A DNA stretch of 64,000 bases, taken from contig JAANOX010000017.1 of assembly GCA_020184695.1 (NCBI GenBank), positions 471,283 through 535,282 on the forward strand. The letters are read 5' to 3'. A program made the position numbers and the translations under genes. Below the pieces are notes generated by a model, which saw nothing but the letters and a program-made list of their open reading frames with translations, did not search any database and was not told the origin of the DNA. This DNA comes from Histomonas meleagridis 2922-C6/04-290x (taxonomy: Eukaryota; Protista; Parabasalia). Below, one piece after another: positions 8,860 through 45,513 of this stretch; within the stretch, counting starts at the first letter, position 1; each line of letters opens with the position of its first letter.

Positions 8860-9285
8860 CTGAAATTTCAGAAAACCAAAACAAAAACGACCGTTAAACA
8901 ATATTTTTCATGAAGATTAAATCCATAAAATTGGATTATGTGTATAAAATTCAAAAATTTTATTAAAAACTCAAATAACAATATATACTAAAGATATACT
9001 TAAAAAATATTTTTTAGAATTTTAGAAATATTGTAGCATGAATTTAAATAATTTTGAACATTTGTCTTCACATAAATATTTCTCTTTGTTAAGTAAACAA
9101 TATGCAAAGGTAAATACATGTTATAAATGAATGTATAATATCGAATGCACTAAGAGTAAAAACCCTCACAAGACTTTTTTTTGGCCGAAGATAAAAAGTG
9201 ACATCACTTTTTCTTTCGAAAATTGATTTGAAAGTACTAATGATCGGTTTTGCTTCAAAAATTTTTTGCAACAAATTTTATAGAA

Positions 9286-11696
9286 ATGATTGAACCCCAG
9301 CCACCGGACAGTGTTGGCGGTTCGAAATCACAGTCATCAACACAACAAGTATACCATAGGATTTATTATTGTCTGAAATCCCAGAGAACAACTTTTGAAA
9401 CATTAAATCAAGTTGTAAATCGACTTACTCCAGAAACAACCGATGACAAAAAGGCAATAGAAATGTTTAAATCTTCACTTTCTCAAATATTAGACTCTTC
9501 TTATGGTCTTTTATTTCAGTTATCATATAATTTTGCAGCATCAGTCAATACTCTTCTTACAGAAAAACTAACGCCAAGCATCGAAAAAGTTGGATACCAA
9601 ATCCTCTCTGCTTGCTTATCTATAAATCGACTTATTCCTTTGCTCTCTCGCTCGAATTTTTCAGGTTCATTTTCAGATGATGATCATCAATTCAATTTTT
9701 CAGCTTCAGGCTCACCTATCTCACCTCCTTCTTTTTCAGATCCAAGTGTTCCAACAGCCAATTCCCAATCGTCAGATTCTGATACTGTCATATGTCGAAT
9801 ATGTGAGAAAAAAATACCACTTAGCATGATTGAAGAACATTCTAAGATGTGTGAAGTTGCATATTTATCAAGTCAGACCATGATGACCACTGATGAGAAA
9901 ATGAAAAAGTTACAAATTCGAACCCAAGAACATCTTCTCAAAATCCATTGGCCTGGTAACGAGCAAAATGTTATTGATACGGTCATTCCTATTCTTCATA
10001 TTATAGCTCTTCTTGATAATGCGATCAAAATTGATAACAATTCAAGTGGCTCCTTTGAAGAATTAGAGTCTATCAAAGACTCCTTTAACCTTGTCAATGT
10101 CCCTGTGTCAAGTCCAGAGCTTAGCATTATATATAGCGAAGCCTTAGTTTTACTCGATGAGAAAATTAAAGCATCAAACAAACTATCCGAAGCAATGGAC
10201 TTTGTAGAGAAAACAACATCAGAAAAACTATGCATTCGCGAAACTACAATAGCTGACTTCCAATTTCTTAAGCGAATTTCAAGCGGCGCATATGCACAAG
10301 TTTTCTTGGCAAAACGAAGTGCAACTAATGACTTAATCGCAGTGAAAGTTATATCTAAGAGTAGTATCCAACGAAAAAATGATAGACAACGAATCCTTCT
10401 CGAGAAGAATATTCTTGAGCAAGTAACTTGTCCATATATGACACAATTCTGTATGTTTTAATATGCGCATTTTTTTATTTCTTTTGTTGATATTTTCATA
10501 AAGCTTGATGCGGACGATAGGAAATTCAATGATATACGATCGTTTTCACCAGAAAATAGTATCGTTGCATAGAATTTTTGTATCGTTTAGATAATGTCAA
10601 AAAAGAAATAAAAAAAGCGCTTTTAGATAGAAATAACTAACACATAGATTTTTCATATATCGGGAAAAATAACTATTACATTGTTATGGAATATTGTCCT
10701 GGAGGCGACTTATATTCATTGCTACAAAATATTGGTTGTTGCCAAGATGAAAATGTTGCTAAGTTTTATACAGCTGAAGTTGTAGAAGCCTTAGAATTCC
10801 TTAGGGAGAGCAATGTAATTCATAGGGATTTAAAACCAAACAATATTTTGGTAAGTGAAATTGGACATTTGAAATTGGCCGATTTCGGTTTAAGTGTTTG
10901 GGGGTTAGTTGATAGGCAATGTGCCTTCGAAGAATCACCTGAACGGATTATGGGCACGCCTGATTACATTGCGCCAGAAATTATCCTCCAGCAGTCGCAC
11001 ACGTTTACTGCCGATTACTGGTCGCTCGGTTGTATACTTTTTGAGATGTTAACTGGGGCACCCCCGTTTCACAGAGAAACCGTTGCGGATACGTTTACGC
11101 AAATTCTAAAAGGCGAATATGACGTTTCTGAATTAAACGATAACTCAGATGAAGCAAAGGATTTAATAGCTAAGCTGTTAAATAAAGACCCTGCAGAAAG
11201 ATTGGGGGCATCGTCAATTAGGGAGATTAAGAATCATCCTTGGTTCGCAAGTATTGATTGGGATAATCTGCAAGAACAAGAACCACCTTTTGTCCCAAGT
11301 TTAGAATCCGAGTTAGATACATCGTTCTTCGAAGAAAAAGAGCCCCCTGAACAAGATTTTAGTACTGATATAGAAGAAGACATAAAATATGCATCAAATT
11401 CCAAAGCACAAAAAAGAGCACTTTCATTTTTCGAGGACTTAAGTGACCAGTACTCGATGAAAGGAAGTGTTGACGAAGAAGATGATTTATTAGGATTTCC
11501 ATCTGCATCTCCAGAAGCATTATCGAGAGTTACAAGGAGAGCAGCGAAGAAAAAGAGATCGTCAAGTATGATACTTGATGATAAGCTTCCCGAGCCAGCG
11601 CCATTACATGAAAGTTATCTTCTCATGGAATCTCACAGTTTTTCAGCTGCAACTGTGCAAACAGGACGGCCTAAGTCTAGAAAGAGACCACAGTAA
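9286..11696 (+). CDS. AGC-family Ser/Thr kinase, MAST/Greatwall/Rim15/IRE-like, one intron: join(9286..10450,10648..11696)
   Basis: Zn-finger-like CRICEKKIPLSMIEEHSKMC, ISSGAYAQV, AVK, HRDLKPNN, DFG, GTPDYIAPE and an AGC C-tail. Splicing gives MTQF-YFSYIGKNNYYIVMEYCPGGDL in frame. Confidence 0.9.
10451..10647 (+). other. Canonical trichomonad spliceosomal intron, 197 nt
   Basis: 5' GTATGT and 3' ACTAACACATAG (fused branch point and acceptor); removal joins the two kinase ORFs in frame. Confidence 0.92.
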
Positions 11697-11918: not shown

Positions 11919-13437
11919 ATGGAATCTGGCGCACCAAAAAATGACTCATTGAAAATACTAAAATTTATTCAACAAGCAATCTATAATTTAAATGATAAAA
12001 ATATTTCTCAAACAGTTCAATCATTAATCAATTTTTTAGACAATGATGAAATATACTCTTTTAATCTTCTGATTAGTCAGATCATTTTTTGTTTATTTAA
12101 ACATATGCAAGCAAAAATGGAACATATGGAAACATATTTAAATTTCATAAAAGAGATTGAAAAATTCGAAGAAAACTATCAAAGCAAATACAAAATCATC
12201 GATGTTTTTACAAATTTTCTGATCAATGAACATAAGCAAGAATCAAATTATCTTCTTGAATATATGGCTGAAAATAATTTCATTAATCCAAAAGTTGTGT
12301 TAAATACAAAGAGTTCATATTTTGTACATTACATGTCAAAAAATGAAATTAAAAGTTTAACGAACGACCCATTCATGTACCAAATTATTAACAATTATGA
12401 AGAACTTTCTAAGAATGATTGGGAACTTCATAAGAAATTAATTAAAGAAGGACATAATACAAATGAAATAGCAAAAATAATTCGAAATGATGAAATAGAA
12501 AAACTTCAAGAAATATCATCTCAAAATGATTTTAATTTTAATCAAACAATTAAGTCATCACTCTATGAAAGAAATTCATTTGTGAATTTTGATTGTTCAC
12601 TTATTGATTATGCAGCATTTTTTGGATCAATCAAATGTTTTAAATATTTAATGTTAAATAATGCTAATATAAAAAATACACTTGAATATGCAGTGGCAAG
12701 TGGAAACCTTGAAATCATTCATTTATGTGTACAAAATAATTCATCAAAATTATATTTATATCAAACAGCTATTGAATTTCATCGAAATGATATCTTTAAA
12801 TATCTTTATGAAAATAAAATTTGTAAGATTAAAAATCTGAGTAATTTAGGGAAGAAATGTGTTCTTTATCATAACTATGATATCTTTGCTTTGTTAGAAA
12901 AAGAAGGAATGAAAATAAATAAAGATATTATAAATGAATCAGCAAAAATAGGAAATATATTTCTACTTAAATATTTACTGCAAAATCATCCAATTCCAAA
13001 TGATATTTTAGTTACTGCTTCCGAATCAGGAAACATTGAACTTGTTAAATATATCTTAGACAGAAATGAAATTAATATTAATAATAAAAATATTTGTTTC
13101 CATTAGTTGATGTTTTTTGAAATATAAAATAATTTTAAAATAACATTTGGTAATTATTTATATTATTTGATACAGCACTTATTTCTGCATCTTCTTTTGG
13201 TTATACAGATATTGTTAAATTACTTCTTAAACAAGAAGAGATTGATATCAATACTAAAAATATTTGTTTGTTTTATTTAAAGCATATTTTCCTGATTTTA
13301 TATTTTAAAATAATAATCGAAAATTATTTAAATTATTTGAAACAGCACTTATATTGGCTACTCGAAATGGTCATACAGAAATAACTAAATTACTTCTTGA
13401 ACAAGAAGGAATTGATATCAATACTAAAGATATTTAA
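11919..13437 (+). CDS. Locus A: DUF3447-like/ankyrin protein with 2 spacer-interrupted ankyrin cassettes
   Basis: Conserved core IIRNDEIEKLQEIS...LIDYAAFFGSIKCFKYL. The ORF stops inside the first spacer block (13106). Cassette Thr codons are at 13172 and 13342. Confidence 0.7.
13092..13437 (+). repeat. Ankyrin cassette array A (170-nt period)
   Basis: Decoded hairpins KNDIGDTAL and KNKYEETAL. Confidence 0.85.
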
Positions 13438-13761
13438 AAGCTTTAAATAATATAAAGAAATTTCATAAAATTTCAATAAAATACTAGGAAAAAGACATGA
13501 GGAAAATGGTCCATTATTATTTAAGATATAAATTTTTTAATCATAAGATGTGCATAATTCTGTTAGAAATAACTATCTTATTTATGTATTCAATATCAAA
13601 AGATTGATATATGTATAGGATTCGATATCAACATATTTGCTGTAAATGTATTTGTCAAAACCGATAAGAATTTTGCGAAAGAGCACTTTTTATTGAGTGG
13701 CAAAACAGCAAATGTTGCTGTTTCAAATAATATAAAGAAAACAATGGCAATAATTAAGAGT

Positions 13762-14625: not shown

Positions 14626-17600
14626 TTGCAATTTTCAGATAAATCACTTAAAAAGTTATTGAACAATTGCATTTTAACTGATCTAAATTCATTGGAAGGA
14701 AAAAATCAAACTGCTTATCTCCAAAAATTGATTTCTCTAGAACATGTTGTATTTAACTCAATCGAAAATAACTTTGATTTTATTGTTGCAGAAACGATGA
14801 ATTTATTTGATGAAAGTTATCCTTATACATTTAATTGTATATTAGTTATTTTAGTTTATTCTGCATTCGTATCACACAGAGAGTCATTTGAAATGTATTT
14901 AAATTATTTACAAACAATCCAAGCAAAAGAAGATAAAATTATTAAAAACAATTCAAAAATTATTGAAATTTTTATTAATTATGTAAAAGAATTTAATACA
15001 CAAGAATCATATTACATTATTGAAAAAATGATTGAAAAAGACTTTGTTAATTCAAACATCACTCGAGGAATTAATTCTAAATTCTTTGTTCATTATAAAA
15101 CAGAAAAAGAAAACAAAAAAATTAAATCAAAAAGTTTAATGGATGAAAAATTTGATAAAAATTATTTAAAACTTTCAAAGAATGATTGGGAACTTCATAA
15201 GAAATATGTTAAAGAAGGAGCTAATCCAAATGAAATTGCGAAAATGATTCGAAATGATGAAATAGAAAATTTTCAAGAAATATCATCACAAAATGATTTT
15301 GATTTTAATCAAACAATTGAACCATCACTTTATGAAAGATGTTCATTTATTAATCAAAGAAATGTTACATTAATTGATTATGCAGCATTTTTTGGTTCAG
15401 TTAAATGTTTTAAATATTTACTTATTAATAATGCAAATTTAACAAATACAGGTAAATATGCAATTGCAAGTGGAAATTTAGAGATAATTCATTTATGTGA
15501 ACAGAATCATTCATCATTTGAAGATGTATATGAAACAACAGTTAAATTTCATCGGAATGAGATCTTCAAATATATTTATGAAAACAAAAGCGGAATTCAT
15601 CAAACAACAACTTATTTAAATAAAAAACAAATTCCATATAAAAATCTTGAATATTATATAAATAATGCACAAAGCTTATCTGATGTAAAGTTACAAGAAT
15701 TAATATATTATTGTATTAACAATGGAAATTATGAAATTTTTTCTATTTTAGAAGAAAAAATTAAATTTGATGAAAACATAATAAATGTAACAGCAAAAAC
15801 TGGAAATTTATATCTTGTTAAACATTTTCTTCAAAAATATCATGTTCCAAAATATATTTTATTGTTTGCTACAGAAGCAGGAAATATTGAACTTGTTCAA
15901 TATATTCTTGAACAAGAAGGAGTCGACATTAATATTAAAGATATTTGTTTTTTTGTTATAAAACTTGTTTTCTTATTATGATATTTGATAATAACATTTG
16001 GAATTTATTTATGATATTTAGAACACCTTTAATGATAGCATCTTCAAGAGGTTATGTAAACATTACTAAATTTCTTCTAGAACAAAAAGAAATTAACTTT
16101 AAAGTCAGGGATATTTCTTTACAATTCTTAAAATTTGTTGTGATAATAATGTAATTTTTTGGAATATTTGGAATTTTTTTTAGATATATTTGATTCAGCA
16201 CTCTTATATGCAGCACATTATGGTTATGTTGAAATATTTAAATTACTTTTTAATAAAGAAGAAAATAATCTTACTAAAAAAGTTATTTTTGATTGTTTTA
16301 TGTATGCTTTAATATGTTAATGTTTTAAATATATATTTGCTATCTGTTGAAAATATTTCAAACATCATTTTTTTATGCAACTTCAAATGGTCATTTAGAA
16401 TTAGTTAAATTACTCCTTGCTCTAAAAGATATCGATGTTAACATGAAAAATATTTATATGTTTTATACATTATTTATTTTAATAATTTGCTATATCAAAA
16501 TAATATTTAAAAATTATTCAAATTAATTCAAACACTTCTTATGAAAGCATCTGAAAATGGTCATACAGAAATAGTTAAATTGTTTCTTGAACAAGAAGGA
16601 ATTAGTGTTAATGATAAAGATATTTGTTTGTTATATTTTGTATTTATTTTAATGATTTGATATTTTAAAATAATATTTGGAAATTATTTATATATATTCA
16701 AACGGCGCTGATGTTTGCATCTCAAAATGGTCATGCAGAAGTAGTTAAAGTACTTCTTGCACAGGATGGAATTGATATTAATGAGAAATCTGTTTATTTG
16801 TTAAATTTAATATCAATTTATATAGTTTAAAATTTCATAAGATTATTTGGAAATTATTTATATATATTCAAACGGCGCTTATGTTTGCATCTCAAAATGG
16901 TCATGCAGAAGTATTTAAATTACTTCTTGCACAAAAAGGAGTTGATATCAATGTTAAAGAATTTTATATGTTTTATTTAAAATTTATTTTAAAAATTTTG
17001 GAATATTTTAAAACAATATTTGGAACATCACTTATTTATGCAACCAAAAATGGAAATTTAGAAATAGTTAAATTACTTCTTGAAAAAGAAGGAATTGATA
17101 TTAATGCTAAAGATATTTATTTGTTTTATTTAATATTTATTTTAATAATTTTATATTTCAATATAATATTTGGAAATTATTTAAATTATTTGAAACAGCA
17201 CTTATGTATGCATCTCAAAATGGCTATATACAAATAGTTAAATTACTTCTTGAACAAGAAGGAATTGATATTAATGATAAAGATATTTGTTTATTTTATT
17301 TGAAATTTATTTTAAATAATTTCGTATTTCAAAAAAATATATGGAAATTATTTTAAATATTTAAAACAGCACTTATGTTTGCATCTGAAAAAGGTCATAC
17401 AGAAATAGTTCAATTACTTCTTGAACAAGAATCAATTGATATTAATGCGAAGTGTATTTATTTGTTTTGCTTAAAATTTATTTTTGTGATTTTGGAATAT
17501 TTTAAAACAATATTTGGAAATTATTTTAATTATTTGGAACAGCACTTATTTATGCATCTAAAAATGGTCATTCAGAAATAGTTAAATTACTTCTTGAACA

Positions 17601-18278
17601 AGAATCAATTGATATTAATGCTAAAGATATTTGTTTATTTGATTTATAAAATTGCTTATCTGGGCATCTAAAAACAATTATACAGAAATAGTTAGGTTAC
17701 TTCTTAAACATAAAGGAATTGATGTTAATGCTAAAGATATTTATTTGTTTTATTTGAAATTTATTTTAATAATTTATTATTTCAAAATAATAATTGGAAA
17801 TTATTTAGAATATTTCGAACAGCACTTATTAAAGCATCTAGAGATGGTCATATAGAAATAGTTAAATTACTTCTTGAACAAGAAGGAATTGATATTAATG
17901 CTAAAGATATTTATTTGTTTTGCTTTATGAATGTTTTAATAATTCTTGATTTCAAAATAATATTTGGAAATTATTTAAATTATTTGGAACAGCACTTATT
18001 TATGCATCTAAAAATGGTAATACAGAAATAGTTAAATTACTTCTTGAACAAGAAGGAATTGATATTAATGCTAAAGATATTTATTTGTTTTATTAAATAT
18101 TTATTTTAATAATTTATTATTTCAATATAATATTTGGAAATTATTTAAATTATTTTGGACAGCACTTATGTGGGCATCTAGATATGGTCATAAAGAAATA
18201 GTTAAATTACTTCGTGAACAAGAAAGAATTATGAAAAAGAAATTCAAAAATGAATATGAATATTCTACAGATAAGTAA
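14626..18278 (+). CDS. Locus B: DUF3447-like/ankyrin protein with 14 spacer-interrupted ankyrin cassettes
   Basis: 451-aa open N-terminal frame with no ATG upstream of the conserved N-terminus. Cassette starts from 16023 to 18159. The final cassette runs into a natural C-terminus ...EYSTDK*. Confidence 0.7.
15943..18278 (+). repeat. Ankyrin cassette array B
   Basis: Intervals 172,167,170,170,170,153,170,171,173,110,170,170,170. Confidence 0.9.
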
Positions 18279-23194: not shown

Positions 23195-24236
23195 TTTGAT
23201 ATTTTAAATCTCAGTTGGTCATTCGAAATTAACGTTTTTCCTTGTCAAAAATTCACTTTTGACTCCATACAACACATAATGCGGCATTTATTAAACTGGA
23301 ACCAAATTAATGACTTCTAAAAAGTACTTTATATAATTCATTGGATCCTATTAATTGAAAATAACATTGTTTTATAGTTTTCTTGACATTAGGTGTTATA
23401 ATGAATGTTTTATGAAAATTTTGTTGGATCTAAAAGATTTTAAATTAAAGAATTTTTACAAAAAGATTAATTAAAAAGCATAACAACCAAATGAGTTTTT
23501 CATGATTTAGATTTTTTTATAAAAATGCATATTCACATCAACTTTCCTCTGTTTATAACTGACACTTTTTGAATAAAGCTACAATTCACACTTAGAAAGC
23601 ATCAATAGGAATTAAAAATAGTGTTCCCATGATGTTAAAATAGGTTCTTCAAAATTAATATAACTAATATTGTATAATAATATTGCACCGCTTGATTCAA
23701 CCTAAAACAAATAATATTAATATAAAAATTAAATATAAATAAAAAAAAAATTTATATTTTTATCATTTAACTCAATAATTTCGTATTTGAAAAGTAGTTT
23801 GGCTTCTTCAATGAATCCATTGTTTAATGCAATAAAAACTGCTATTTCAAATAATTCATTTGAATTACAAGTGTCATTTTGACATATAAAATAATTTAAG
23901 TTAATTTTAAATGAAATAAACAAATACTTTCAGCTTTGAGATCAATTCCTTCTTTTTTAAATAGCAAAATGAAAATTTCTATGTAATTCTTTTTTAATGC
24001 ATACATAAGTGCTGTGCAATATAATTTGAATTAATGTTATTATAAGTAACATAGATATACATTCATGAGTATTGAGACATTTGCATCATTCTCGATATAA
24101 ACGGTTTCTATGATCTCGCAACATATTTTGATTCAGAAAAAACCAAGCAAACTTAGTTAAACATGTATTGGCAATTTATATGTAAACTTATCAAATAACT
24201 CCTGCATATTGTGAGAAATTTAATCGTATTTTACAA

Positions 24237-27059
24237 ATGAAAAAGGAAAACATGAAAAAAGATCTAAATGAAATGAAAATGCTTTTATCAATAAAACAAA
24301 TTGTATTCAATTTAGATAAAGAAAACATTAGTCTATCAGCAGAAACAATCATTAATGTTTTTGATAAAAATTTCCCAACATCTTTTAACATAATTATTAC
24401 GCAAATGATATATGGATTCCTTGTTGGGAGAATACATGATTATGACATAAATATTTATTTAAATTTTATAAAAGAGATTGAAACATTAGAAGATAACAAT
24501 AAAATTAAATCAAAAATTTTTGAAACATTTTCAAGTTTTCTTCTAAATAAAGATTCACAAGAATCATATTATCTTCTTGAGAATATGATTGGATGTAATT
24601 TTCTTGATTCAAGTATTGCACAAAATAAAAAGAATGCTCATTTTGCTCAATATATGGAAGAAAGTGATATTAAAAAATTTTTTTATATTAAGTTTATGAA
24701 ACAAGTCATCAAAAATATTGAAGAACTTAAAAAAGACAATTGGAAATTACATAAGAAGTTAATTAAAGAAGGAGTTAATCCAAATGAAATACCAAAAATA
24801 ATTCAAAATGATGAAGTTGATAAACTTCAAGAAATATCATCACAAAATGATTTCGATTTTAATAAATATATTAAACCATCACTTTATGAAAGAAGTGATT
24901 TTATTAATCAGAAATATGTTTCATTAATTGATTATGCAGCATTTTTCGGATCAATTAAATGTTTTAAGTATTTACTTATGAATGGAGCAAATGTAAAAAA
25001 TACAGGTAAATATGCTGTTGCAGGTGGAAATTTAGAAATAATTCATTTATGTGAACAAAATCATTCATCATTTGATGATGCATATGAAACAGCAATTATG
25101 TTCCATCGAAATGATATCTTTCATTATCTTTATGAAAAGAAATATAAAAATTTAGAAATATTAGGAATAAAATGCATTATGTATCATAACTATGAAATTT
25201 TTATGTTTTTACTTGATGAAGGAATGAAAATCTATGATTCTTTTATCAATGAAGCAGCAAAAATTGGGAATATATTTCTCATAAAATATTGTCTTCAAAA
25301 TCATCAAATTCCAAAGGATATTTTGGTTTTTTCATCAGAATCAGGAAACATTGAACTTGTTAAATATGTTTTATCTCTAAAAAGTATTAATATTAATACT
25401 CTATGCGTTTATTTGCTTTGTTTAAAATTTGTTTTATTTTTATGGAATTTTAATACAATATTTGGAAATTATTTATTTTATTTTATACAGCACTTATAGC
25501 TGCATCTGAAAGAGGTTATACTGAAATAACAAAATTACTTCTTGAACAAGAAGGTATTGATGTTAATGTTAAAAATCTTTTTAATTTTAATTATTTTATA
25601 TTTCAAAATAATAATTGGAAATTATTCATTTTATTTAATACAGCACTTATGCGTGCATCTCTATTTGGTTATATAGATATTGTTAAATTACTTCTTGAAA
25701 ATAAACAAATTGAAATAGATGCTAAAAATTTTTATTTACTTTTTTTAATATATATTAATATGTTTTAATGTGTAATACTAAGTTTTATGGATCATTTATA
25801 ATATTTGATACTCCACTTATTTTCGCATCTTTAAGTGGCAATACAGAAATCGTTAAATTACTTCTTGAACAAAAAGGAATTGATATTAATGCTAAAAATA
25901 TTTGTTTATTTTATTTAAACTTTCTTTTAATATCTTGATGCTTTACTACAATATTTGGAAATTATTAAAAATATTTAATACAGCATTTCTTTGGGCATGT
26001 TTAAATGGTCACACAGAAACAGTAAAATTCCTTCTTGAACAAAAAGGAATTGATATTAATGCTAAAAATATTTGTTTATTTTGTTTAAACTTTCTTTTAA
26101 TTTCTTGATGCTTTATTACAATATTTGGAAATTATTAAAAATATTTAATAAGGCATTTCTTTGGGCATGTTTAAATGGCCATATAGATACAGTAAAATTG
26201 CTTCTTGAGCAAGAAGGAATTGATGTTAAAGATGATATTTATTTATTGAAATTCTTTTAAGTGTTTTGATATTACATAAAATTATTTGGAAATTATATAA
26301 AATATTATGGGCTGCACTTTTACTTGCATCTAAAAATGGTTACTTAGAAATAGTTAAATTACTCATAGAACAAAAAGGAATTGATGTAAATACAAAAGAT
26401 GTTTATCCATTTTACATCAGGTTCATATCAATGATTTGAAAAATCAAAATAATATTTGGAAATTATTTGTATTATTTAATACAGCTTTAATGTTGACATG
26501 TTTAAGTGGTTATACAGAGATAGTTAAATTTCTTCTTATGCAAAAAGGAATTGATATTAATGTTCAAGATATTTATTTGTTTAATTTGATATTACTTTTG
26601 GTTATTTTTTGTTGGAAAATATTATTTGGAATTTGTTCTCAATATTTTATACACCTCTTATGGTTGTTACATTAGATAATCATATTGATATTGTTAAATT
26701 ACTTCTTGAACAAGAAAGTATTGATGTTAATGCTCAAGACATAAAATTGTTTTATTTAATATTTATTTTAATAATTTGATGTTTCAAAATAATATTTGGA
26801 GTTTATTTATATTATTTAATACTGCACTTATATATGCATCTCAAAATGGTTATACAGAAATAGTAAAATTACTTCTTGAACATGAAAAAATTGATATTAA
26901 TATTAAAAATGTTTATTAAATCTTTTTAATATTATTTTTAATGGTTTAATGTTACACAAAATTATTTGGAAATTATTTATCTTCCTTAAAACAGCACTTC
27001 AAATAGCATGTGAAAATGAAATAATAGATGTTATTGAAATGTTTTCTGGTAAAATCTAA
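24237..27059 (+). CDS. Locus C: DUF3447-like/ankyrin protein with 10 spacer-interrupted cassettes
   Basis: Intact 420-aa N-terminal ORF ending just after the first spacer block. Cassette starts from 25487 to 26991; final repeat TALQIACENEIIDVIEMFSGKI*. Confidence 0.75.
25407..27059 (+). repeat. Ankyrin cassette array C
   Basis: Intervals 153,170,170,170,161,170,170,170,170. Confidence 0.9.
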
Positions 27060-30780: not shown

Positions 30781-31557
30781 ATGCAATTCAACGTCAGGAT
30801 TATTGAAGCGCAAGGCCTTCCAAAGATGGACAAATTTGGAAAGGTCGATCCATACGTTGTTGTTCAGCTTTTCGGAGACAGTATGCAACGTCGAACAAGG
30901 GTTATCCAAAAAGAATATAACCCGAAATGGAACCAAGAATTCTCTTTCTTACTTAGAAACCCAGCTACACAAAAAGCTGTCCTCACACTAAAAGACCAGG
31001 ATGCTGTTGGAAACGACGACACAATTGGAATGATTGAGATTCCAATCTCCTCAATTCCACCAAACGTAGTTCTTGACAGATGGCTTGACCCAAGACCAGC
31101 TAAGGGTGTTAAGAACCCAGGAAAACTTCATGTATTATTACAAGTTGCTGATAAAAGCGTTAAACCATTCTCTGGACCAGTACAACCACCTCCAGGAGTA
31201 TATCCACAAGTTCACCCAGTTCCACCACCCGGCTATGGTGTACCTCCAGGACATCCAATGCCACCACCCGGCTACGGTGCACCTCCTCCTCCACCTCCAG
31301 GATATGGTGTTCCACCACCAGGCCATCCAATGCCACCTCCACCAAGGCCAATGCCAGGACAACCAATGCCACCACCAGGATATGGTGCACCACCTCCAGG
31401 ATACGGAGCACCACTTCCAGGACAACCAGTTCCTCCAAGACCATTACCAGGTCAACCAATGCCACCACCAGGATATGGTGCACCTCCACCACCAGGCTAT
31501 GGCGCTCCACCTCCACCAGGTTATGTTCCACCACCAGGCCCACCACGACCATATTAA
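30781..31557 (+). CDS. C2-domain protein with Pro/Gly/Tyr-rich (XYPPX-like) repeat tail
   Basis: C2 motifs (IIEAQGLPKMDKFGKVDPYV; NPKWNQEF; DDTIG) followed by PPPGYGAPPP repeats. Confidence 0.88.
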   Translation: MQFNVRIIEAQGLPKMDKFGKVDPYVVVQLFGDSMQRRTRVIQKEYNPKWNQEFSFLLRNPATQKAVLTLKDQDAVGNDDTIGMIEIPISSIPPNVVLDRWLDPRPAKGVKNPGKLHVLLQVADKSVKPFSGPVQPPPGVYPQVHPVPPPGYGVPPGHPMPPPGYGAPPPPPPGYGVPPPGHPMPPPPRPMPGQPMPPPGYGAPPPGYGAPLPGQPVPPRPLPGQPMPPPGYGAPPPPGYGAPPPPGYVPPPGPPRPY

Positions 31558-36543: not shown

Positions 36544-39500
36544 TCACCAGAAGGGGGCCCACCCATAATACATTTGCGCCAAATTCATTTCATCTGTTGC
36601 CATTTCTATTAACTTCTTCACCTGTTCTTTTTCGTTCAATTTCATTCCGAATTCCACTCCGCATAATTTGTCACTGACTCTACTGATTGCCTTTTTCATC
36701 ATTGTTCCTTTTTCCTCATTTCTTTTCTCACTATTTCGATACCAAATTGTATCCGTAATTGGATCTTTGACGAAAATATCCAAAAAAGCCAACAACACGT
36801 CCTTGTTTTTCCTCATTAACTTCATTACATATTCCGCAGTCATAGAGAAAACTCCATTAACTCCACTTGCTCCAAATGCTCTTACGATCATTCTCGTCAA
36901 TCTAAAAGGAACAGTTTCATGTACATAAGCTCTTAAATTCGCCTTTTCGAAACAATCGCTAAAATCAATATGGATAACATTACCAGTGCCTTTCATCACT
37001 AATATATTCGATGGATGTCTATCACCAATACCCATAATGTAACCAATGATCGACATTAATCCATTTGACTTCGAAAAGTTTGTAACTTTGTTCAGCCAAA
37101 TTTCGGCGTTTTGAGATTGTAACCAAATTGTTTCACGAATATCATCATCAGAATGACAAGAACAAACTTCACGATGTAACTCAAGTTTTTGGATGATACT
37201 TAATCTTAAAGTTGCTTCTTTTTCGCCGTATATTTGATTGTTCCCAATGTAATCACGGATAATTTGTTGTTCCTCATTTTCGATAATACCTAAAACTTTC
37301 CGATGCCAAGAAATCATTGAATATAAAGTTTCTCCTCCTTCAGCCCAAACTATTAAACCAGCGTTTGGTGATATTGGTACAATTGGTACTTGTTTAATGT
37401 TCAAATGTTTCTCTAATCCGTTTTTATCATCATGTAAAATGGAATTAGCTAATGAGAACAATTGTACTATTCGTTGATCTAATCTTAAGTCTTCTCTACC
37501 TTTTAATAAATATTTATAATTTCGACCATCACTACCTATTATACGTAACTTTCGTGGGAGTTTCGCAGATGGTATCATCTTCATTACATGTCCAATCTTG
37601 TGTATTGTGATTGGAGTTTTATCCACGGAATAATATCCGGGAACGACTAATGAATAAGGATGATCAATCGAATTAAGTTCTAAATCATTTATATCAATTG
37701 TTGGAAGTCTTTCCATTTTAGTTTGTAATGCATTCTTTATTAATGTCATTGTATTACATATTATTACTAAACTTTTATATTGTATACCATTTTTACCCTT
37801 ATCCGCACCACCACATATTCGACCTAATTGTACATTAAATCCTATAATTTTCGAATCATTTAATAGATTACTTTCAAATTGTGATTTTTTAGATTTCATT
37901 ATAGTGATAATTTGTTGAAAGATATTTATAATTTCATCATATTTCTCATTTTCATAATAAGAAATTGCTTTCTCTAATAATATTATAGTTTCTTCAACAG
38001 ATGTAACAGCGATATGTAACATTGCTGAAGTAAATGTTTCTGTATCATTCATTAATGTAAAATGTTTCTCACTCATTTTCTTAATAAAATTTAATAATGT
38101 TTTCGATGATGTTGGAATTCTTTCAACTAAACATAAAGGGATAGCTAATGCTTGAAAATGATTTATCGAAAAATTCCGTACAATTTTATAGACAACATTT
38201 CGTACATCTTTATTTTCATTATCGAAATGTATCATTAATTGTGGTATTATTTGTATGATAGAAGAAGGAGATAAAGACAATAAATTCTTTGCAGCACATT
38301 CAAAATTTGTTAAATGTGGACCAAAAGTAAAAAACAAATTACATAAATGACATAATAAATGTAATGAAGGCCGAGTTAATGATATTAATGTAGCAAATCC
38401 ATGTATAGCATTACTCGCATAATTATTACGATCAACTTCATTATAAGAATCATTTTGTGCACAACCTAAGTTAAAAAATGCCCAATGTTTCCAACCTTTA
38501 ATTCTATTTGGTTGTATTTCAGTTACAATTTTTAACAAAGGTATTGGATTAGGATTAATAGGACAACGACTAACATAAGCACAAACAGCATCACAAAATG
38601 TTTCATTATAACTTAAATTATTAATAATATCAATGAATTCATTACAATTATTAGTTAATTGATTATCAAAACGATATTTTGCTTTTAATATTTTAATTTT
38701 ATCGTTATTAATATCTTCTTTTATTATATCATTAAAACAATTCTCTAATAAGTTATATTCATGTAATTTACGTAATGAATTTATATAATCGAAATTGATT
38801 TCAAACATTTCTTCTTTATTACATTGAAGTAATTGTTGAACTTTATAAATATGACCTAATTGAGTTGAATCACGTTTAATATAATCTGCTTTAGATTTCC
38901 ATATTAATAAAATTTCTTTTGATGTAATTTTGTTTTCACGTTGATATATTATATCTTTTAATTCCATAAATATCATTGATTTATATATAATAGAAAGTGA
39001 TGGCTCATAAGTACCTGATAAAAAAGAAGACATATTCATTGATAATAAAGAAAACCCTCGTTTAAACCATTGTTTAGCAGTATCAGTTTGATTTAAATCT
39101 AAAGCGATTAATGATTTCATTATACAAGTATTAGGATCATCGATTCTAATATATGGTAAAAATTTTTTTGCGTTTTTTTTCGAATACCTTGCAGCCGCTG
39201 CAAATATTATTGCTGTTTGTGATTGAATATTTTTAGGAAATGAATTAAAATCTTTACTAATTTCATTAATACTTTCCCAATCTTCAATTAACATTGAACA
39301 AGATAAATATTTAATTAAATAATTTTCATTACGTTTGTTTTCATTTAATTTTTGTGAATATATATCACGAGCTTGTTTCCACATAGATAAAGTTTCAAGT
39401 AATTCACAATTACTATTTGGTGATTTAGCTATAGATAATAATCCTAAAGCTGATTCTTTCCGTTTTAATAATGATTGTATTCGTAATAAATGTGGTATAA

Positions 39501-42500
39501 TATCATTATTTAAATTCGATATCTTCTCATAAAATCGAATAGCTATAAACCAAGAATTACATCTTTCTGCTATTTGCGCTATAATTAAAGGATCTTTAAA
39601 CAAGTTAAATTGTGCTCTATCCATAGCTTCACAAGCAGATATTATAACCTCTAAAATATCAGTAGGTGTATGAGAATTATGAACTATTTCTAGTAAATAA
39701 TTACTTAACATTTCTTTCCCTTTATCTTCAGAATAATCCCATACAGATACTATGACAAAAGGAAATAATCCACGTTCAAAATCAGATGAAACTCGTAATA
39801 ATGGATGTGATGCACGAATAGCTGGTGAATTAGAACATAATACAAGTTCTTGTGTGATTTGTAATAACCATGAAGACCAATCATTTTCATTTACTGAACT
39901 TTGAAGTCTTCCACGACTAAATACTTGTGATAATGATGAAGGTTGTATTGAAGGTTTCGATCGAATTGGATAAGGATCAGGTACAGCATCGAAATTACGT
40001 AAGAATTCAAACGTTGAATTTGTATTAATTTCTTTTAAAAACTTTGTGATTTCGGGATGTATTTCATTTAAATTAATTGGTAATGAAAACATTATCGAAT
40101 GAAATCGAATGATTAATAATTCAATTAATCGGATTGATATATATTGTAAATGATTATTTGTGTTTATAAAATTATATACTAAATGAAATGAAGGTAAAAC
40201 TATTTGAGGAAATGAACAATTTCGTAATATTTGACATAAAAATGTTATAGCGAATTCTGATACAAAATCACATTTTAAAATATATTTTTGAATTAAATCA
40301 AAATATAATCGAATTGTACCATCAGCATAAATTACTATTAATGTTAACGCTAATAAATAATTAATTATAATATTTGAATCTTCTTCTTTTTGTATTAAAT
40401 TATAAATAATTTTAAATGTTTTTGGTCCATATTCTTTAAAATTATATTTAATTGCAAAAATTAATGCACATAAAAGTTTAATTGCATCAATACTTGTGTT
40501 TTCTTTTAAATAAGGTAATATTAATTTATATATATCATCTTTATAAGGTAAAATTGCTACATCTACAACTAATATTATAGTCGTTAAAAAATGTAATAAA
40601 TCATCAGATGCAATTAATTCAGGTTTCATATGAAATGAATTAATTATTTTTATTACATCTTCTAAATATATTAAACATTTTTGTGAATCACTTTGAAATA
40701 TATAAGTCAAAGCATTAATTAAAACAGGTAATTCATGTTGTTTACCATCTTTTAATTGTCCTAAAATATATTTCATTACATAATTTAATGTGCTTTTTTC
40801 TCGGTTTTCTTTATCATATAATGGATATGAATCATTTGTTGGAATATGAGTTTTAGGACTATGAAATTGATGTGGATCTAATGCACCAATAGTACCTAAT
40901 AATTGTAACATTGATTTATTAACTTTAGAATTCGTTGAAGTCTTTAAGAATTGATATAATTGTTGATGGAATTTTACAATATTCTTACTACTAATTTGTT
41001 GAATTATAGGAAAATTTCGGGAAATTGTTTTTAATGTTTTAATTGTAGCTAAATAAATTCCGGTCTTTTTATATATAAAAAATTGATTAACAACTGAAGA
41101 TATTGTTAAAAATAACATATCATTATCAAGCGCTTTTTTATTAGCTAATTCAGTTATACTTTTTAATGTATAAATACGAATTTTTTGATCAACTTTTTGT
41201 TCTAATTTATCATAAACTCTTTTTGGCATTGTCAATGATACTTCTATTCTCGAATTAAGGATTTTTAATAAGAATTTTAATAAATTCGTTTGATAATTAG
41301 TTATAATTTCTCCACTGTTTCGAATTAATAATGGTAACATTGATATTTCTTTTAATCGATCTTCATTTAAATAATTCTGGAAATAAAATGAAGGAAATTG
41401 TTCAAGTTTTGTTTGGAAGAAATCTATTTTTATGTTCGGAATAATTTTTTGAATTTTTGATATTAAATTTAATGCCGAAATTTTAACCGAATATTCTTCA
41501 TCTGAATAAAGAGTTTCAATAATAAAAAATAACAAATGATCTGAAAAATTTATTATTAAAAAATCATTAATAGAATAAAAAAATGTTATTTTACATTTTG
41601 TTGAAAAATTATTTTGTTTCGTATATAATAATATTAATAATTCTTTCTGTTTTTCTTTGTCAAAGCGTTGAAGGATAATTATTAATGTTTGTATTGATAT
41701 GTTTTTAATTTCCTCATCAGTTGAATTAATGAAACAATTATAAACAAAATCCCAAAATTCTTCGATTTCAAATTCTTTAATATTTGATAATATCGATATA
41801 AATTTAATAATATATAAATTCATTGTTTTAATTTCTTCTTCAAGTTTTGGTTTAAATATATTAATAATATTTGTGGAATCTTCTGGAAATGTCTTAAAAT
41901 AAATGGAACAAAGGTTAATCGAATATTCATTAAAATTTAATGTTTTCATTGTATTCAAAAAAAGATTTCGATCAACTATTTCAGGTGAATATTTGATTAT
42001 ACTAGTACCAATAATAAAGAAACAATTAGCATTGTTTTTAAGCGTTAAAAGTAATAAATTTCCATAAATACAAAATGTTTTTGGCATAAACTTCATAATT
42101 TTAGAATAAACCTCACAAACATTGGTATCGTTGAAATTGATGTTATCGTTACTCTGAAAAAGTGAGAGAATTGAATCGGAAAATTCAAGTGCTGTTTCGC
42201 GGAGTACTTTGCAAAGTTTAATGAGAATCCATAGATAATCTGGAGTGGCATTTGACTTTAAAAACAAAAGAATATTTGTAAAGATATCTTTTGCTTTTTC
42301 AATGCATACATCACTGTTGTTCTCTAGAAAAGACTCAAGAAGTAAGAGATATCGAGGTAAATTTGCCGGGGCGCTATAAAGGATTGTTGTGATTTGTGCG
42401 GAAACGATATGGTTACCTTGTGGACTAAATTGGATTAAACGCTGAAAGAGATTTACTGCTATTTGTTGAATTTCTTCAGTGCCAATATTTATTGCAGTGG

Positions 42501-43017
42501 AAATTATTGTGTTAAGTTCATTTGATGACTTGATAAAAAAATTGGAATCAATTGAAAAAAGATGATGAACAAGAAAAACAGAAGACATTACTGCGGAACG
42601 TGTGGCCCTTGTTGTGAGCCAGGAAATACATCGTTCAAAAAGCTTGGGGATTATTGGATATGTGATAACATTTAAAATACGTTTTATAATATGAGCTATT
42701 CCTTCTATTAAAATAATGGATTCCAAAGGTAGGATTCTTTCGATATTCTGATTGATTAAAATAAGTTGGTTTTGATCTTCTTCAATATCAATATAAAAAG
42801 AAAATCCTACTAATGTGCCAAGGCGATCTTCAGTATTTCGCGAGTGTAGTTTCTCTTGTGACCACCGGAATAGCTCATTTAGAAAAATTTTTTGATTTTC
42901 TTCTTTCGCATTTTTGAAAGCTTTTGTAAACAAGATGTGTGATTGTGTATAAGCTTCTTTAAAAGTTGTAGCAGAAGATATTTTAGCTTTGATGTTTTCG
43001 AAAGTTTGAAAATCCAT
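36544..43017 (-). CDS. TOR: TOR-like PIKK kinase (HEAT, FAT, FRB-like, kinase, FATC)
   Basis: LQLLGTIGALDP, LVLCSNSPAIRA, YLLKGREDLRLDQR, GIGDRHPSNILV, HIDFSDCFE, ETVPFRLTRM, NLAQMYYGWAPFW. Confidence 0.93.
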   Translation of the reverse strand: MDFQTFENIKAKISSATTFKEAYTQSHILFTKAFKNAKEENQKIFLNELFRWSQEKLHSRNTEDRLGTLVGFSFYIDIEEDQNQLILINQNIERILPLESIILIEGIAHIIKRILNVITYPIIPKLFERCISWLTTRATRSAVMSSVFLVHHLFSIDSNFFIKSSNELNTIISTAINIGTEEIQQIAVNLFQRLIQFSPQGNHIVSAQITTILYSAPANLPRYLLLLESFLENNSDVCIEKAKDIFTNILLFLKSNATPDYLWILIKLCKVLRETALEFSDSILSLFQSNDNINFNDTNVCEVYSKIMKFMPKTFCIYGNLLLLTLKNNANCFFIIGTSIIKYSPEIVDRNLFLNTMKTLNFNEYSINLCSIYFKTFPEDSTNIINIFKPKLEEEIKTMNLYIIKFISILSNIKEFEIEEFWDFVYNCFINSTDEEIKNISIQTLIIILQRFDKEKQKELLILLYTKQNNFSTKCKITFFYSINDFLIINFSDHLLFFIIETLYSDEEYSVKISALNLISKIQKIIPNIKIDFFQTKLEQFPSFYFQNYLNEDRLKEISMLPLLIRNSGEIITNYQTNLLKFLLKILNSRIEVSLTMPKRVYDKLEQKVDQKIRIYTLKSITELANKKALDNDMLFLTISSVVNQFFIYKKTGIYLATIKTLKTISRNFPIIQQISSKNIVKFHQQLYQFLKTSTNSKVNKSMLQLLGTIGALDPHQFHSPKTHIPTNDSYPLYDKENREKSTLNYVMKYILGQLKDGKQHELPVLINALTYIFQSDSQKCLIYLEDVIKIINSFHMKPELIASDDLLHFLTTIILVVDVAILPYKDDIYKLILPYLKENTSIDAIKLLCALIFAIKYNFKEYGPKTFKIIYNLIQKEEDSNIIINYLLALTLIVIYADGTIRLYFDLIQKYILKCDFVSEFAITFLCQILRNCSFPQIVLPSFHLVYNFINTNNHLQYISIRLIELLIIRFHSIMFSLPINLNEIHPEITKFLKEINTNSTFEFLRNFDAVPDPYPIRSKPSIQPSSLSQVFSRGRLQSSVNENDWSSWLLQITQELVLCSNSPAIRASHPLLRVSSDFERGLFPFVIVSVWDYSEDKGKEMLSNYLLEIVHNSHTPTDILEVIISACEAMDRAQFNLFKDPLIIAQIAERCNSWFIAIRFYEKISNLNNDIIPHLLRIQSLLKRKESALGLLSIAKSPNSNCELLETLSMWKQARDIYSQKLNENKRNENYLIKYLSCSMLIEDWESINEISKDFNSFPKNIQSQTAIIFAAAARYSKKNAKKFLPYIRIDDPNTCIMKSLIALDLNQTDTAKQWFKRGFSLLSMNMSSFLSGTYEPSLSIIYKSMIFMELKDIIYQRENKITSKEILLIWKSKADYIKRDSTQLGHIYKVQQLLQCNKEEMFEINFDYINSLRKLHEYNLLENCFNDIIKEDINNDKIKILKAKYRFDNQLTNNCNEFIDIINNLSYNETFCDAVCAYVSRCPINPNPIPLLKIVTEIQPNRIKGWKHWAFFNLGCAQNDSYNEVDRNNYASNAIHGFATLISLTRPSLHLLCHLCNLFFTFGPHLTNFECAAKNLLSLSPSSIIQIIPQLMIHFDNENKDVRNVVYKIVRNFSINHFQALAIPLCLVERIPTSSKTLLNFIKKMSEKHFTLMNDTETFTSAMLHIAVTSVEETIILLEKAISYYENEKYDEIINIFQQIITIMKSKKSQFESNLLNDSKIIGFNVQLGRICGGADKGKNGIQYKSLVIICNTMTLIKNALQTKMERLPTIDINDLELNSIDHPYSLVVPGYYSVDKTPITIHKIGHVMKMIPSAKLPRKLRIIGSDGRNYKYLLKGREDLRLDQRIVQLFSLANSILHDDKNGLEKHLNIKQVPIVPISPNAGLIVWAEGGETLYSMISWHRKVLGIIENEEQQIIRDYIGNNQIYGEKEATLRLSIIQKLELHREVCSCHSDDDIRETIWLQSQNAEIWLNKVTNFSKSNGLMSIIGYIMGIGDRHPSNILVMKGTGNVIHIDFSDCFEKANLRAYVHETVPFRLTRMIVRAFGASGVNGVFSMTAEYVMKLMRKNKDVLLAFLDIFVKDPITDTIWYRNSEKRNEEKGTMMKKAISRVSDKLCGVEFGMKLNEKEQVKKLIEMATDEMNLAQMYYGWAPFW

Positions 43018-43471: not shown

Positions 43472-44329
43472 TTAATCATCAATATCAATACCATGCATTC
43501 CTTTTTGTTCATAAAGTAATTTAACTATTTCTGTGTGACCATGTTGAGATGCTAAAATTAATGCTGTTTCAAATAAATTTAATGATTTCCAAATAATATT
43601 TTCAAATAAAAAAGTATTAAAATAAATTTCAAATAAAAAGAATAAATATTTTTGACAATAACACCAATTCTTTCTTGTTCAAGAAGTAATTTAACAGTTT
43701 CTGTATGACCTTTCCAAGATGCAACCATAAGTGCTGTATAAAATATTTGGAATAATTTCCAAATATTATTTTGAAACTTCAAATTATTAAAGCATTTTAA
43801 AAATAAAACAAATAAATATTTTTAGCATTAATATCAATTCCTTCTTGTTCAAGAAGTAATTTAACAATTTCTATATTACCTTTCCAAGATGCAAGCATAA
43901 GTGCTGAATTAAATATTTTAAATACTTTTCAAATAAAAACATAAAATATCAAATTTTTAATATATATATCAAATAAAACAAATAAATATTTTTAGCATTA
44001 ATATCAATTCCTTTTTGATCAAGAAGTAATTTAACGATTTCTGTATAATCTCTATCAGATGCAATAATAAGTGCTGTTTCATTTATTTTGAATAATTTTC
44101 AAATATTATTTTGAAATATAAAATTATTAAAAGAAATTTTAAATAAAACAAATAAATCCCTTTAGTATTAATATCAATTCCTTCCTGTACAAGAAGCAAT
44201 TTAACTATTTCTGTATGACCATTTTTAGTTGCTTGTATAAGTGCTGTTTTAAATATTTTATACAATTACCATATATATTATTTTGAATTCCAAAATAATT
44301 GAAATAAATTTTAAATTAAACAAATAAAA
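43472..44329 (-). repeat. Ankyrin cassette array D
   Basis: 4 of 4 intervals are exactly 170 nt; decoded KGKYEETAL, KNDDENSAL, KNLEGYTAL, KNEFGETAL. Confidence 0.9.
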
Positions 44330-45513
44330 ATCTTTAGAATTTACATCGATTCCTTCTTGATCTAAAATATATTTAACAAGTTCAATATTTTCTAGATGAG
44401 AAAACTAAAATATCTTTAGGAAGTTGATTTTCTTTAAGAAAATATTTAACAAGAAATATATTTCCAATTTTAGCTGCTTCATTAATAATTGAATTGCTAA
44501 TTTTCATTCCTTCTCCAATTAGATATGTAAATAATTCATAATTATGATGTAAAAGACATTTCTCACCTAATTTTTCTAAATTATCTATTTTATAAATTTT
44601 ATTTTCATAAAGAGATTTAAATATATCATTTTTATGGTATTCAATTGCTGTTTCATACGCATCTTCAAATGATGAATGATTTTGTTCACATAAATGAATA
44701 ATTTCTTCATTTCCACTTGCAATTGCATATTGGCCTGTATTTTTTACTTTTGCACCATTTATAAGTAAATATTTAAAACATTTAACTGATCCAAAAAATG
44801 CTGCATAATCAATTAATGTAACATTCCAATGATTAATAAAATCACATCTTTCATAAAGTGATTCTTCAATATATTGATTAAAATCAAAATCATTTTGTGA
44901 TGATATTTCTTGAAGTTTTTCGATTTCATCATTTCGAATTATCTTTGCTATTTCATTTGGATTATTTCCTTCTTCAATTAATTTGTGAAGTTCCCAATTG
45001 TTCTTTTTAAGTTTATTAATATTATATTTGTCTTCATCTAAAAAATTTATATATATTATATCTTCGATGTTTTTTCCAGATAAATGAATGAAATACAATG
45101 ATTCTATTATGCCAACAATATTTATTTCAAGAAAATTATTATCAATCATTTTTATAAGAAGATAATATGCTTCATGTGTAGATTTGCCAATAAGAAAATT
45201 TGTAAATATATTAAATATTCTTAAATCACTTTTTTTATTTTGTTCTATTTTATCAACTTCTTTTAAAAAGTTTAAATACATATCAGAACCAGTTAATTGT
45301 ATGGTGAATAATGAATATATTATTTTACTAATAATAATGTCAAATGATAATGGATGTTTTTCGTAAAATTTGTTGAATATTGTATTTACTGATTGAAAGA
45401 TATTTTCTTTATCTAAATTAAAAATAATATCTTTTATTGATTTTATTGTTTCCCATTCATTTTGATATTTTTTATTTGACTTTTCAAACTTTTCCAACTT
45501 GTTTAAGATGCAT
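43472..45513 (-). pseudogene. Locus D: DUF3447-like/ankyrin gene with 5 spacer-interrupted cassettes; N-terminal part frameshifted
   Basis: The ATG at 45513 is out of frame with the core ORF. A small deletion near 44385 breaks FSS..GNIELVKY. Cassette starts at 44247, 44077, 43907, 43737 and 43567. Confidence 0.65.

Follow-up and report, generated by a model that had tools for sequence, protein, structure and literature searches.

Seventeen-nucleotide spacers and probable single-codon exons in ankyrin-repeat genes of Histomonas meleagridis: evidence pointing to a previously undescribed kind of ultra-short intron

We analyzed a window of 64,000 nucleotides (nt) of genomic DNA of Histomonas meleagridis 2922-C6/04-290x (contig JAANOX010000017.1, positions 471,283 to 535,282; coordinates below are those of the window), in which the ankyrin repeats of the gene 14626-18278 are interrupted by blocks of four 17-nt spacers (S1–S4) alternating with three triplets (c1–c3). 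The spacers are present in the genomic DNA and absent from RNA, and the ends of exons in RNA precisely coincide with the borders of spacers; the triplets behave like codons, and single spacers are present or absent independently. Probably, each spacer is a micro-intron that is removed separately from its neighbors, under strict length control and by machinery derived from the spliceosome, while the triplets are kept as single-codon micro-exons. These observations point to a previously undescribed kind of ultra-short intron, and no published description of such elements was found in the literature. In the block 17739-17815, the triplets are GAA, ATT, and GGA, and the last spacer is followed by CGA ACA GCA CTT (Table 1).

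Absence of the spacers from RNA

The presence of 31-mers sampled over 15943-18278 was assessed in four RNA runs (2023) and two DNA runs (2021, two samples). The former were taken as RNA because the depth ratio of two neighboring unique genes varies between them (approximately 1- to 15-fold among the four runs). The RNA runs contain 0.40, 0.39, 0.37, and 0.34 of the array 31-mers, the share expected if only words lying wholly within exons survive being 0.394, and the DNA runs contain 0.84 and 0.81; in the flanks of the gene, the RNA share of 31-mers is 0.82-0.96. As the words spanning spacers are missing from RNA and present in both 2021 DNA runs, an assembly artefact and translational bypass are excluded. 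Hence, the view that the spacers stay in mRNA and are dealt with by ribosome bypass or frameshift, or are cut from the DNA of some nuclei, or are artefacts of assembly, is largely refuted and deserves hardly any credence, even though the 170-nt period moves the frame by 2 and fully unspliced paralogue forms occur among the RNA contigs (one contig, X2 record 15). The same layout is seen in independent metagenome assemblies, and the DNA runs, with 0.81-0.84 of the array words, do not agree with a germline limitation of the kind known for the internal eliminated sequences of ciliates. Bypass elements (T4 gene 60, Magnusiomyces mitochondrial byps) are similar to the spacers in being short non-coding inserts that lack splice signals and interrupt the frame, but they stay in mRNA and have matched take-off and landing codons, whereas the codons flanking the spacer blocks differ, with GAT or AAT before the block and a variable codon after it. 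Because the spacers are absent from RNA, translational bypass is not needed, as the original prediction had argued from the codons. Retention of S1–S3 in RNA was considered as well and rejected, since it predicts a share of approximately 0.72 compared to the observed 0.34-0.40, and stops occur in 22 out of 33 units.

The 31-mer share fits four excisions and one 77-nt excision equally well. In the latter case, a single non-canonical intron of about 77 nt per repeat would be removed in one step, and the repeat would be a 31-residue ankyrin unit without the loop; in each run, 4-8 contigs have a joint of 17115 to 17193 that skips 77 nt, with the intervening letters unreported. The two possibilities differ in the predicted RNA borders. 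An RNA contig specific to this locus (X1 record 7; 416 nt, with depth like that of the gene itself) matches only 16358-16454, with zero mismatches, while the exon, and hence the segment predicted by a single 77-nt intron, is 16359-16451. The additional T on the left corresponds to the third base of the triplet GCT and the additional ATT on the right to the first triplet of the next gap, so the contig is extended by 1 nt and 3 nt, as predicted by retained triplets, and neither extension follows from a single intron; by our own estimate, the chance of both at an arbitrary junction is approximately 0.002. Further arguments against one-step removal are the 9-12 letters found between exon ends in RNA contigs, the units of 153, 150, and 110 nt, which differ by whole 17-nt modules, the avoidance of stops in the triplets, and the three additional residues that the Ank profile wants between the exons. 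Taking all this into account, we regard a single intron as highly improbable.

Neither GT nor AG adjoins the three borders defined by RNA contig ends (13091, which is an exon end and the end of X1 record 1, 16358, and 16454), and thus an ordinary GT-AG register is not used there, as the original prediction held. Data on paralogues show the loop itself. At least ten paralogue contigs connect ...GAT to ACAGCA via three codons and a variable codon, e.g., AAA AAT GGA AAA and GAT TTA GGT GAA, the pattern being ...GGA xxx ACAGCA. In one paralogue contig (X2, 18078 to 17171), c1 and c2 are joined to GGA, S1–S3 are gone, and S4 is still present. This contig looks like a partly processed form. Along with the fully unspliced forms, it may indicate that removal is stepwise and that S4, the one class starting with AA, is the last or the slowest to go. 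The RNA loop letters were also compared with the units of the window, yielding a single near-match (26758), which has another codon in front and is uninformative. The RNA depth of spacers relative to exons is confounded by cross-mapped paralogues and was used only qualitatively. Loose ends of X2 and X4 contigs at 18002 read ...TTTTTAGCACTAACAA immediately before ankyrin exon sequence, which is similar to the 3′ end that a canonical ACTAAC-type intron of some paralogue would have.

Codons, length, and sequence of the spacer blocks

Class consensuses and counts given below were derived from 33 clean 77-nt gaps in the window (132 spacers). The triplets c1–c3 contain no stops (0 out of 99, with approximately 8 expected; P about 1e-4 to 2.5e-4) and are rich in purines (74% vs. 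37% in the spacers). Position c3 is a Gly codon in 25 out of 33 units (GGA in 23, GGT and GGG in one each), c1 is mostly Asn or Lys (class: N, K, D, E, Y), and c2 is mostly Asp, Tyr, Glu, or Asn, and also Ile. No columns of the unit vary more than c1 and c2, whose pairwise identity is 0.51 and 0.46, respectively (0.68-0.79 in spacers and 0.67 in third positions of the exon codons).

Each unit contains a stop-free block of 31 codons, x-T-A-L-...-I-N-A-K-D. Single exons match the Pfam Ank profile (PF00023) with 32.5-36.6 bits, the cut-off being 21.1, and cover profile positions 3 or 4 to 32 of 33. Exactly three positions are missing between consecutive exons, namely, 33, 1, and 2, forming the tip of the K/N-D-G hairpin. 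An uninterrupted G-x-T-A-L is found in no frame of the window, in approximately 60 units. The layout is not due to chance: although the period of 170 nt is not divisible by three, all 31-codon exons are stop-free, and the triplets contain 0 stops out of 99. A shortest-path parse of open reading frames (ORFs) was tried and rejected as evidence, as it drops only about one 17-mer per unit, with the frame still open, so that the number of spacers is undecidable from frames.

Among 45 inter-exon gaps, 33 are 77 nt long, four are 60 nt, two are 80 nt, and gaps of 57, 17, 74, 68, 78, and 79 nt occur once each, the 74-nt one being a 77-nt gap with a mis-set exon end. Gaps of odd length were parsed by eye. 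In total, 43 out of 45 gaps fit n × 17 nt plus whole codons. The 60-nt gaps consist of three spacers (either S1 or S4 is absent) and three codons, the codon left over being attached to the exon; the 57-nt gap, of three spacers and two codons; the 80-nt gaps, of four spacers and four codons; and the 17-nt gap, of one spacer without the loop. Accordingly, exactly one spacer is lost from units of 153 nt, one spacer together with one codon from units of 150 nt, and three spacers together with the codons from units of 110 nt, which supports regarding the spacers as independent. Approximately 169 out of 172 spacers are 17 nt long, the exceptions having 18 nt (17305-17322), 19 nt (16173-16191), and 14 or 11 nt (near 26234). 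Three length changes in about 172 spacers, compared to 339 substitutions from the consensus in 2244 bases, are far below any neutral indel rate, and thus the spacer length is strongly constrained. This is in line with the earlier claim that length is held more tightly than sequence, which is true for the relatives as well, and the block 16282-16358, cited in its support as highly diverged, indeed parses as 17/3/17/3/17/3/17.

The spacers form four position-specific classes with consensuses ATTTATTTgTTTTATTT (S1), ATTTATTTTAATAATTT (S2), ATTTcAAAATAATATTT (S3), and AATTATTTAAATTATTT (S4), and 121 out of 132 spacers are uniquely nearest the consensus of their own class. The first dinucleotide is AT in 26, 21, and 24 and GT in 3, 4, and 5 spacers of the classes S1, S2, and S3, respectively, while S4 starts with AA in 26 cases and AT in five; overall, AT starts 76, AA 28, and GT 13 of the 132 spacers. 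The last three bases are TTT in 24, 27, 30, and 28 spacers of S1, S2, S3, and S4, respectively (109 out of 132). No spacer ends in AG (0 out of 132), and moving the borders creates no AG. The A+T content of the spacers is 92%. An ACTAAC-like parabasalid branch motif is not found in the 17-mers. Position 14 is a conserved A in all four classes (108 out of 132) but not in the relative L004. Thus, the sequence description given in the original prediction stands: four classes specific to their position, which start with a purine followed by T and end in TT, starts mostly AT or GT with AA in S4, ends mostly TTT and never AG, no branch motif of the parabasalid type, and S2 and S4 having 14 out of 17 positions in common, a value that was recomputed with the same result.

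The best named relatives of the N-terminal domain come from H. meleagridis, followed by Tritrichomonas foetus. Metagenome contigs with paralogous or orthologous genes (approximately 50% identity in the N-terminal domain and 77% in AP-1 gamma, which the window also encodes) have retained the 17/3/17/3/17/3/17 layout. The gaps in L004 all have 77 nt, the spacer interior is very unlike the consensus observed here, and S1–S3 mostly start with G (usually GT, in some cases GC or GA). In L006, another ankyrin subfamily likely belonging to the same species, there are two 17-nt spacers per unit, some of them starting with GT. As the layout is kept in relatives and the sequence is different, it is the length and the end composition that are conserved, not the sequence. 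The position-specific classes are largely inherited via duplication of units within this genome, and the 5′ G of the spacers looks ancestral. The T. foetus homologue has uninterrupted loops; the trait was seen in the sampled genomes of the Histomonas-like type but not in this single T. foetus homologue. No array was found downstream of the Histomonas locus L002 (P0014), and no related loci were found in the Joint Genome Institute (JGI) metagenomes.

These data also bear on the possibility that the interrupted arrays are dead or untranslated relics, and the RNA contigs carrying the loop originate from ankyrin genes without interruptions at other places in the genome. Most RNA contigs at the locus are indeed paralogues (agreement 0.7-0.9), and two spacers have odd length. 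However, all 31-codon exons are stop-free despite 25-35% divergence, the layout is maintained in other species, and none of approximately 60 units in the window has an uninterrupted loop. Moreover, RNA contains essentially all exon words of the locus, including those from diverged unique units, but not the junction words, and the locus-specific contig ends at exon borders. Hence, we find it very unlikely that the arrays are relics.

Possible mechanism and comparison with known systems

If the 17-mers are micro-introns, as we consider probable, the triplets would encode the β-hairpin loop (Lys/Asn, Asp/Asn/Tyr, Gly) linking the 31-codon exons, so that the 34-residue repeat is restored in frame. 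The spacers would be removed one by one via two-step transesterification, with no 3-nt exon being released. The agent would be the spliceosome or its derivative accepting a purine followed by U at the start, the purine being G in relatives and mostly A in this genome, and the 3′ site would be chosen mainly by the fixed 17-nt distance within the U-rich tail rather than by AG. The spliceosome or its derivative seems the most economical agent because stepwise transesterification frees no trinucleotides and the spacers of relatives start with GT; these GT starts point to spliceosomal ancestry rather than to wholly new machinery. The 3′ site is unreadable from sequence alone, since ATTT is repeated within the spacers and is not followed by a constant base; this makes a fixed distance from the 5′ end likely, similarly to Stentor, in which 91% of introns have 15 nt (PMC9505925). 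The elements would have spread through duplication of ankyrin units rather than by general intron gain.

The original prediction suggested a ruler-type mechanism measuring 17 nt. The part of it that stands is the strong length constraint; on the other hand, such a constraint is equally expected for minimal spliceosomal introns, and 18- and 19-nt spacers do occur. Unless they are homopolymer errors of the assembly, these two spacers would, with a strict 17-nt ruler, disrupt the frame of seven intact repeats. A pure 17-nt ruler and the identity of the machinery are thus unproven.

Several observations weigh against removal of four micro-introns by a spliceosome-derived machinery. Spacers with the ends AU...UU or GU...UU and with neither AG nor ACTAAC are to our knowledge not used by any spliceosome, and we know of no spliceosome substrate as small as four introns with 3-nt exons within 77 nt; at the same time, canonical signals are used in this very genome (intron 10451-10647). 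The 18- and 19-nt spacers, lying in an otherwise intact gene, misfit the fixed distance, reflecting either tolerance or homopolymer errors of the Nanopore-based assembly. In 11 out of 33 units, frame 0 stays open from S1 up to and including c3, and ORF logic alone leaves the number of spacers unfixed. Finally, the base-exact junctions come from one locus-specific contig, at 16358-16454 rather than 17739-17815, and most of the RNA evidence is formed by cross-mapped paralogues (agreement 0.7-0.9), with some of the loop-bearing contigs possibly stemming from uninterrupted genes.

Alternatively, the four 17-nt pieces could be excised from RNA without the spliceosome, by an endonuclease measuring 17 nt and an RNA ligase (of the tRNA-splicing or RtcB type), or under the direction of a guide RNA, which corresponds to the ruler idea of the original prediction. 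The spacers have no AG, no branch motif, and no common 5′ dinucleotide if S4 is included, their length is fixed while the sequence drifts, in relatives as well, and the 3′ border is undefinable locally, as ATTT is also found inside the spacers and the following base varies. However, cut-and-ligate chemistry would free the 3-nt exons, and the spacers of relatives start with GT, the spliceosomal 5′ signal. Eukaryotic tRNA endonuclease works with a ruler, and splicing of the tRNA type (bulge-helix-bulge) and of the IRE1/HAC1-XBP1 type resembles the process considered here in the non-spliceosomal removal of short RNA segments, but these systems need defined helices or hairpin loops, and none are conserved in the spacers. 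RNAalifold predicted 0 pairs for 33 units, both with and without exon flanks, and the mean z-score of the minimum free energy was −0.4. The lack of conserved structure argues against the bulge-helix-bulge and IRE1-type mechanisms, and against pairing of the ends as in euglenids. Indeed, non-conventional introns of euglenids are also nuclear, non-GT-AG, and removed from mRNA, but they have variable length and paired ends, whereas the spacers have fixed length and show no pairing or covariation. As for guides, the spacer sequence differs among species, making one universal complementary guide unlikely, and no stand-alone or antisense copies of spacers were found outside the arrays in the window. 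On balance, non-spliceosomal excision appears unlikely.

A broader formulation, which we put forward tentatively and consider less probable than not, is a new RNA-processing system, either non-spliceosomal or a deeply remodelled spliceosome, that excises fixed-length U-rich segments of 17 nt without GU-AG or branch signals, measures their length instead of recognizing a 3′ site, and stitches together single codons. Such a system may provide loop diversity in a large binder-like ankyrin family of a parasite via optional single-codon exons.

Ultra-short spliceosomal introns are the closest candidates for comparison with the 17-mers. The tiny introns of Stentor coeruleus have 15-16 nt (91% have 15 nt), are AU-rich, have GU at the start and AG at the end, and have the branch A fixed at position 10 (PMC9505925). 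Both types of elements are ultra-short, AU-rich, absent from mature RNA, and have a very narrow length distribution, which likely has a common cause, by analogy, a steric minimum in the catalytic center. The Stentor introns are scattered through ordinary genes between normal exons, whereas the 17-mers occur four in tandem with 3-nt exons between them, start with AU, GU, or AA, end in UU with no AG, have a length of 17, and are limited in the window to ankyrin loops. In Trichomonas vaginalis, 63 active introns of 23-196 nt are known; no transcript has more than one of them, and they all share a GT 5′ site and a CTAAC...AG motif at the 3′ end (PMC12316389). Its type B short introns (23-25 nt) resemble the 17-mers in coming from the same phylum and from an intron-poor genome and in having a short U-rich interior (PMC12316389), but none of the T. 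vaginalis signals are found in the 17-mers.

Compared with U2-type introns in general, the spacers are likewise absent from RNA, while GT is found at the 5′ end of 13 out of 132 and AG at the 3′ end of 0 out of 132. U12-type, or AT-AC, introns have 5′ ATATCC, 3′ AC, and the TCCTTAAC branch site; the spacers start with ATTTAT or AATTAT and end with TT. Microexons of animals and plants (3-30 nt) are flanked by canonical introns of considerable length, with enhancers in the introns defining them. Similarly to them, the triplets are exons of single-codon size that are kept in mRNA and encode surface loops, as seen from the ends of X1 record 7, matching GCT and ATT (one locus-specific contig), from the paralogue loops, and from 0 stops out of 99; the difference is that here three of them are only 17 nt apart.

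If the 17-mers are indeed introns, they would be among the shortest intervening sequences in nuclear mRNAs, the first abundant class that lacks AG altogether and, in this genome, mostly lacks GU as well, and the first case of several consecutive one-codon exons. RNA excision would then be specifiable almost wholly by length and base composition, which would bear on the choice of the 3′ splice site and on the minimum substrate of the spliceosome. Intron-finding pipelines that demand GT-AG would overlook such elements in other protists, too.

Distribution, annotation, and other features of the window

With 20-38% G+C, the window is rich in AT; genes are densely packed in it, and long ORFs are found with the standard code. 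Tandem Repeats Finder (TRF) detected arrays with the 170-nt period at 16385-18230, 25585-26999, 43497-44383, and 55775-58052, and further periods of 153, 150, and 110 nt. A profile of one unit found 63 units on both strands of the window, and the same spacer layout is present in approximately 60 ankyrin units from eight arrays. Every array stands after an ORF of 365-450 codons that belongs to the DUF3447/ankyrin family, a typical parabasalid family. No 17-nt spacers were found in the window between other long ORFs, away from the ankyrin arrays. As very long genes in the window have no spacers, the 17-mers are not a general trait of long genes; an uninterrupted ORF of 2157 codons is located at 36544-43017 (minus strand). 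The normal intron starting with GTATGT that had been noted in the same window was located at 10451-10647 and ends with ACTAACACATAG; hence, this genome also employs the ordinary spliceosome with its usual signals.

Table 1. Spacer blocks, exons, repeat arrays, and the ordinary intron in the window.
Feature	Coordinates	Strand	Remarks
Whole gene	14626-18278	+	DUF3447/ankyrin N-terminal ORF to 15942; 14 repeat exons between spacer blocks; stop 18276-18278
Ankyrin exon before the block, 31 codons	17646-17738	+	Ends ...NAKD; stop-free block
Spacer S1, 17 nt, ATTTATTTGTTTTATTT	17739-17755	+	Same as the S1 class consensus
Single-codon micro-exon c1, GAA (Glu)	17756-17758	+	Ank profile position 33; RNA depth varies at 17756
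Spacer S2, 17 nt, ATTTATTTTAATAATTT	17759-17775	+	Sequence parse
Single-codon micro-exon c2, ATT (Ile)	17776-17778	+	Ank profile position 1
Spacer S3, 17 nt, ATTTCAAAATAATAATT	17779-17795	+	Sequence parse
Single-codon micro-exon c3, GGA	17796-17798	+	Conserved loop Gly; Ank profile position 2
Spacer S4, 17 nt, AATTATTTAGAATATTT	17799-17815	+	AA-starting class
Ankyrin exon after the block, 31 codons	17816-17908	+	RTALIKAS...NAKD; Pfam Ank E=3.6e-8, profile positions 3-32 of 33
Exceptional S4, 19 nt	16173-16191	+	T8 homopolymer
Diverged spacer block	16282-16358	+	Parses 17/3/17/3/17/3/17; S1–S3 start GT; triplets TAT, AAT, GCT
Exceptional S2, 18 nt	17305-17322	+	One additional A
Unit with one 17-nt spacer, no loop codons	17629-17645	+	110-nt period
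Ordinary parabasalid intron, GTATGT...ACTAACACATAG, 197 nt	10451-10647	+	Joins ORF 9250-10461 to ORF 10686-11696, protein kinase
Repeats of a second gene, same spacers	12999-13440	+	RNA contig end at exon end 13091
Array, 170- and 153-nt units	25311-26910	+	S1 missing in the gap after the exon starting at 25484, its codon fused to that exon
Array, 170-nt units	43478-44419	-	Unit parse
Arrays, 153-, 170-, and 173-nt units	47858-51100	+	Unit parse
Largest array, 15 units	55642-58094	-	One 150-nt unit without one spacer and one codon

The genome of H. meleagridis has 28% G+C and has been sequenced for two strains; introns are reported to be scarce, at most one per gene, and ankyrin is not mentioned (PMC8529796). 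A search with the N-terminal ORF against 5.8 billion proteins and 50% representatives yielded only genomic and metagenomic models stopping at the first spacer, and no full-length protein derived from a transcript. The public models (L002, L006; P0014, P0015, P0030, P0031) stop at the first spacer or just past it, and P0031 reads in frame through a 60-nt three-spacer block. With models ending at the first spacer, the ankyrin arrays are absent from the annotated proteome. The ankyrin genes of Histomonas-like parabasalids are thus truncated in the present annotation, and, if the proposed excision is true, many long ankyrin proteins are missing from the current proteome. The H. meleagridis annotation lists the family as “cask-interacting protein (caskin) 1,2.”

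At the beginning of the ankyrin gene (14626-14800), its N-terminal ORF has no ATG before approximately residue 57, and homologues (P0030) align from further upstream; the true start of the gene may lie behind a further interruption or frameshift. Two diverged ankyrin units with the same spacer layout are located at 23759-24018 on the minus strand, upstream of the minus-strand ORF 23194-21980, and these repeats may be on the N-terminal side of a gene. The Rfam scan of the window found nothing but a tRNA gene, at 63888-63960 (RF00005, 45 bits). Proline-rich tandem repeats of 21-24 nt (PPPGYGAP type) are located at 31327-31536, inside ORF 30781-31557.

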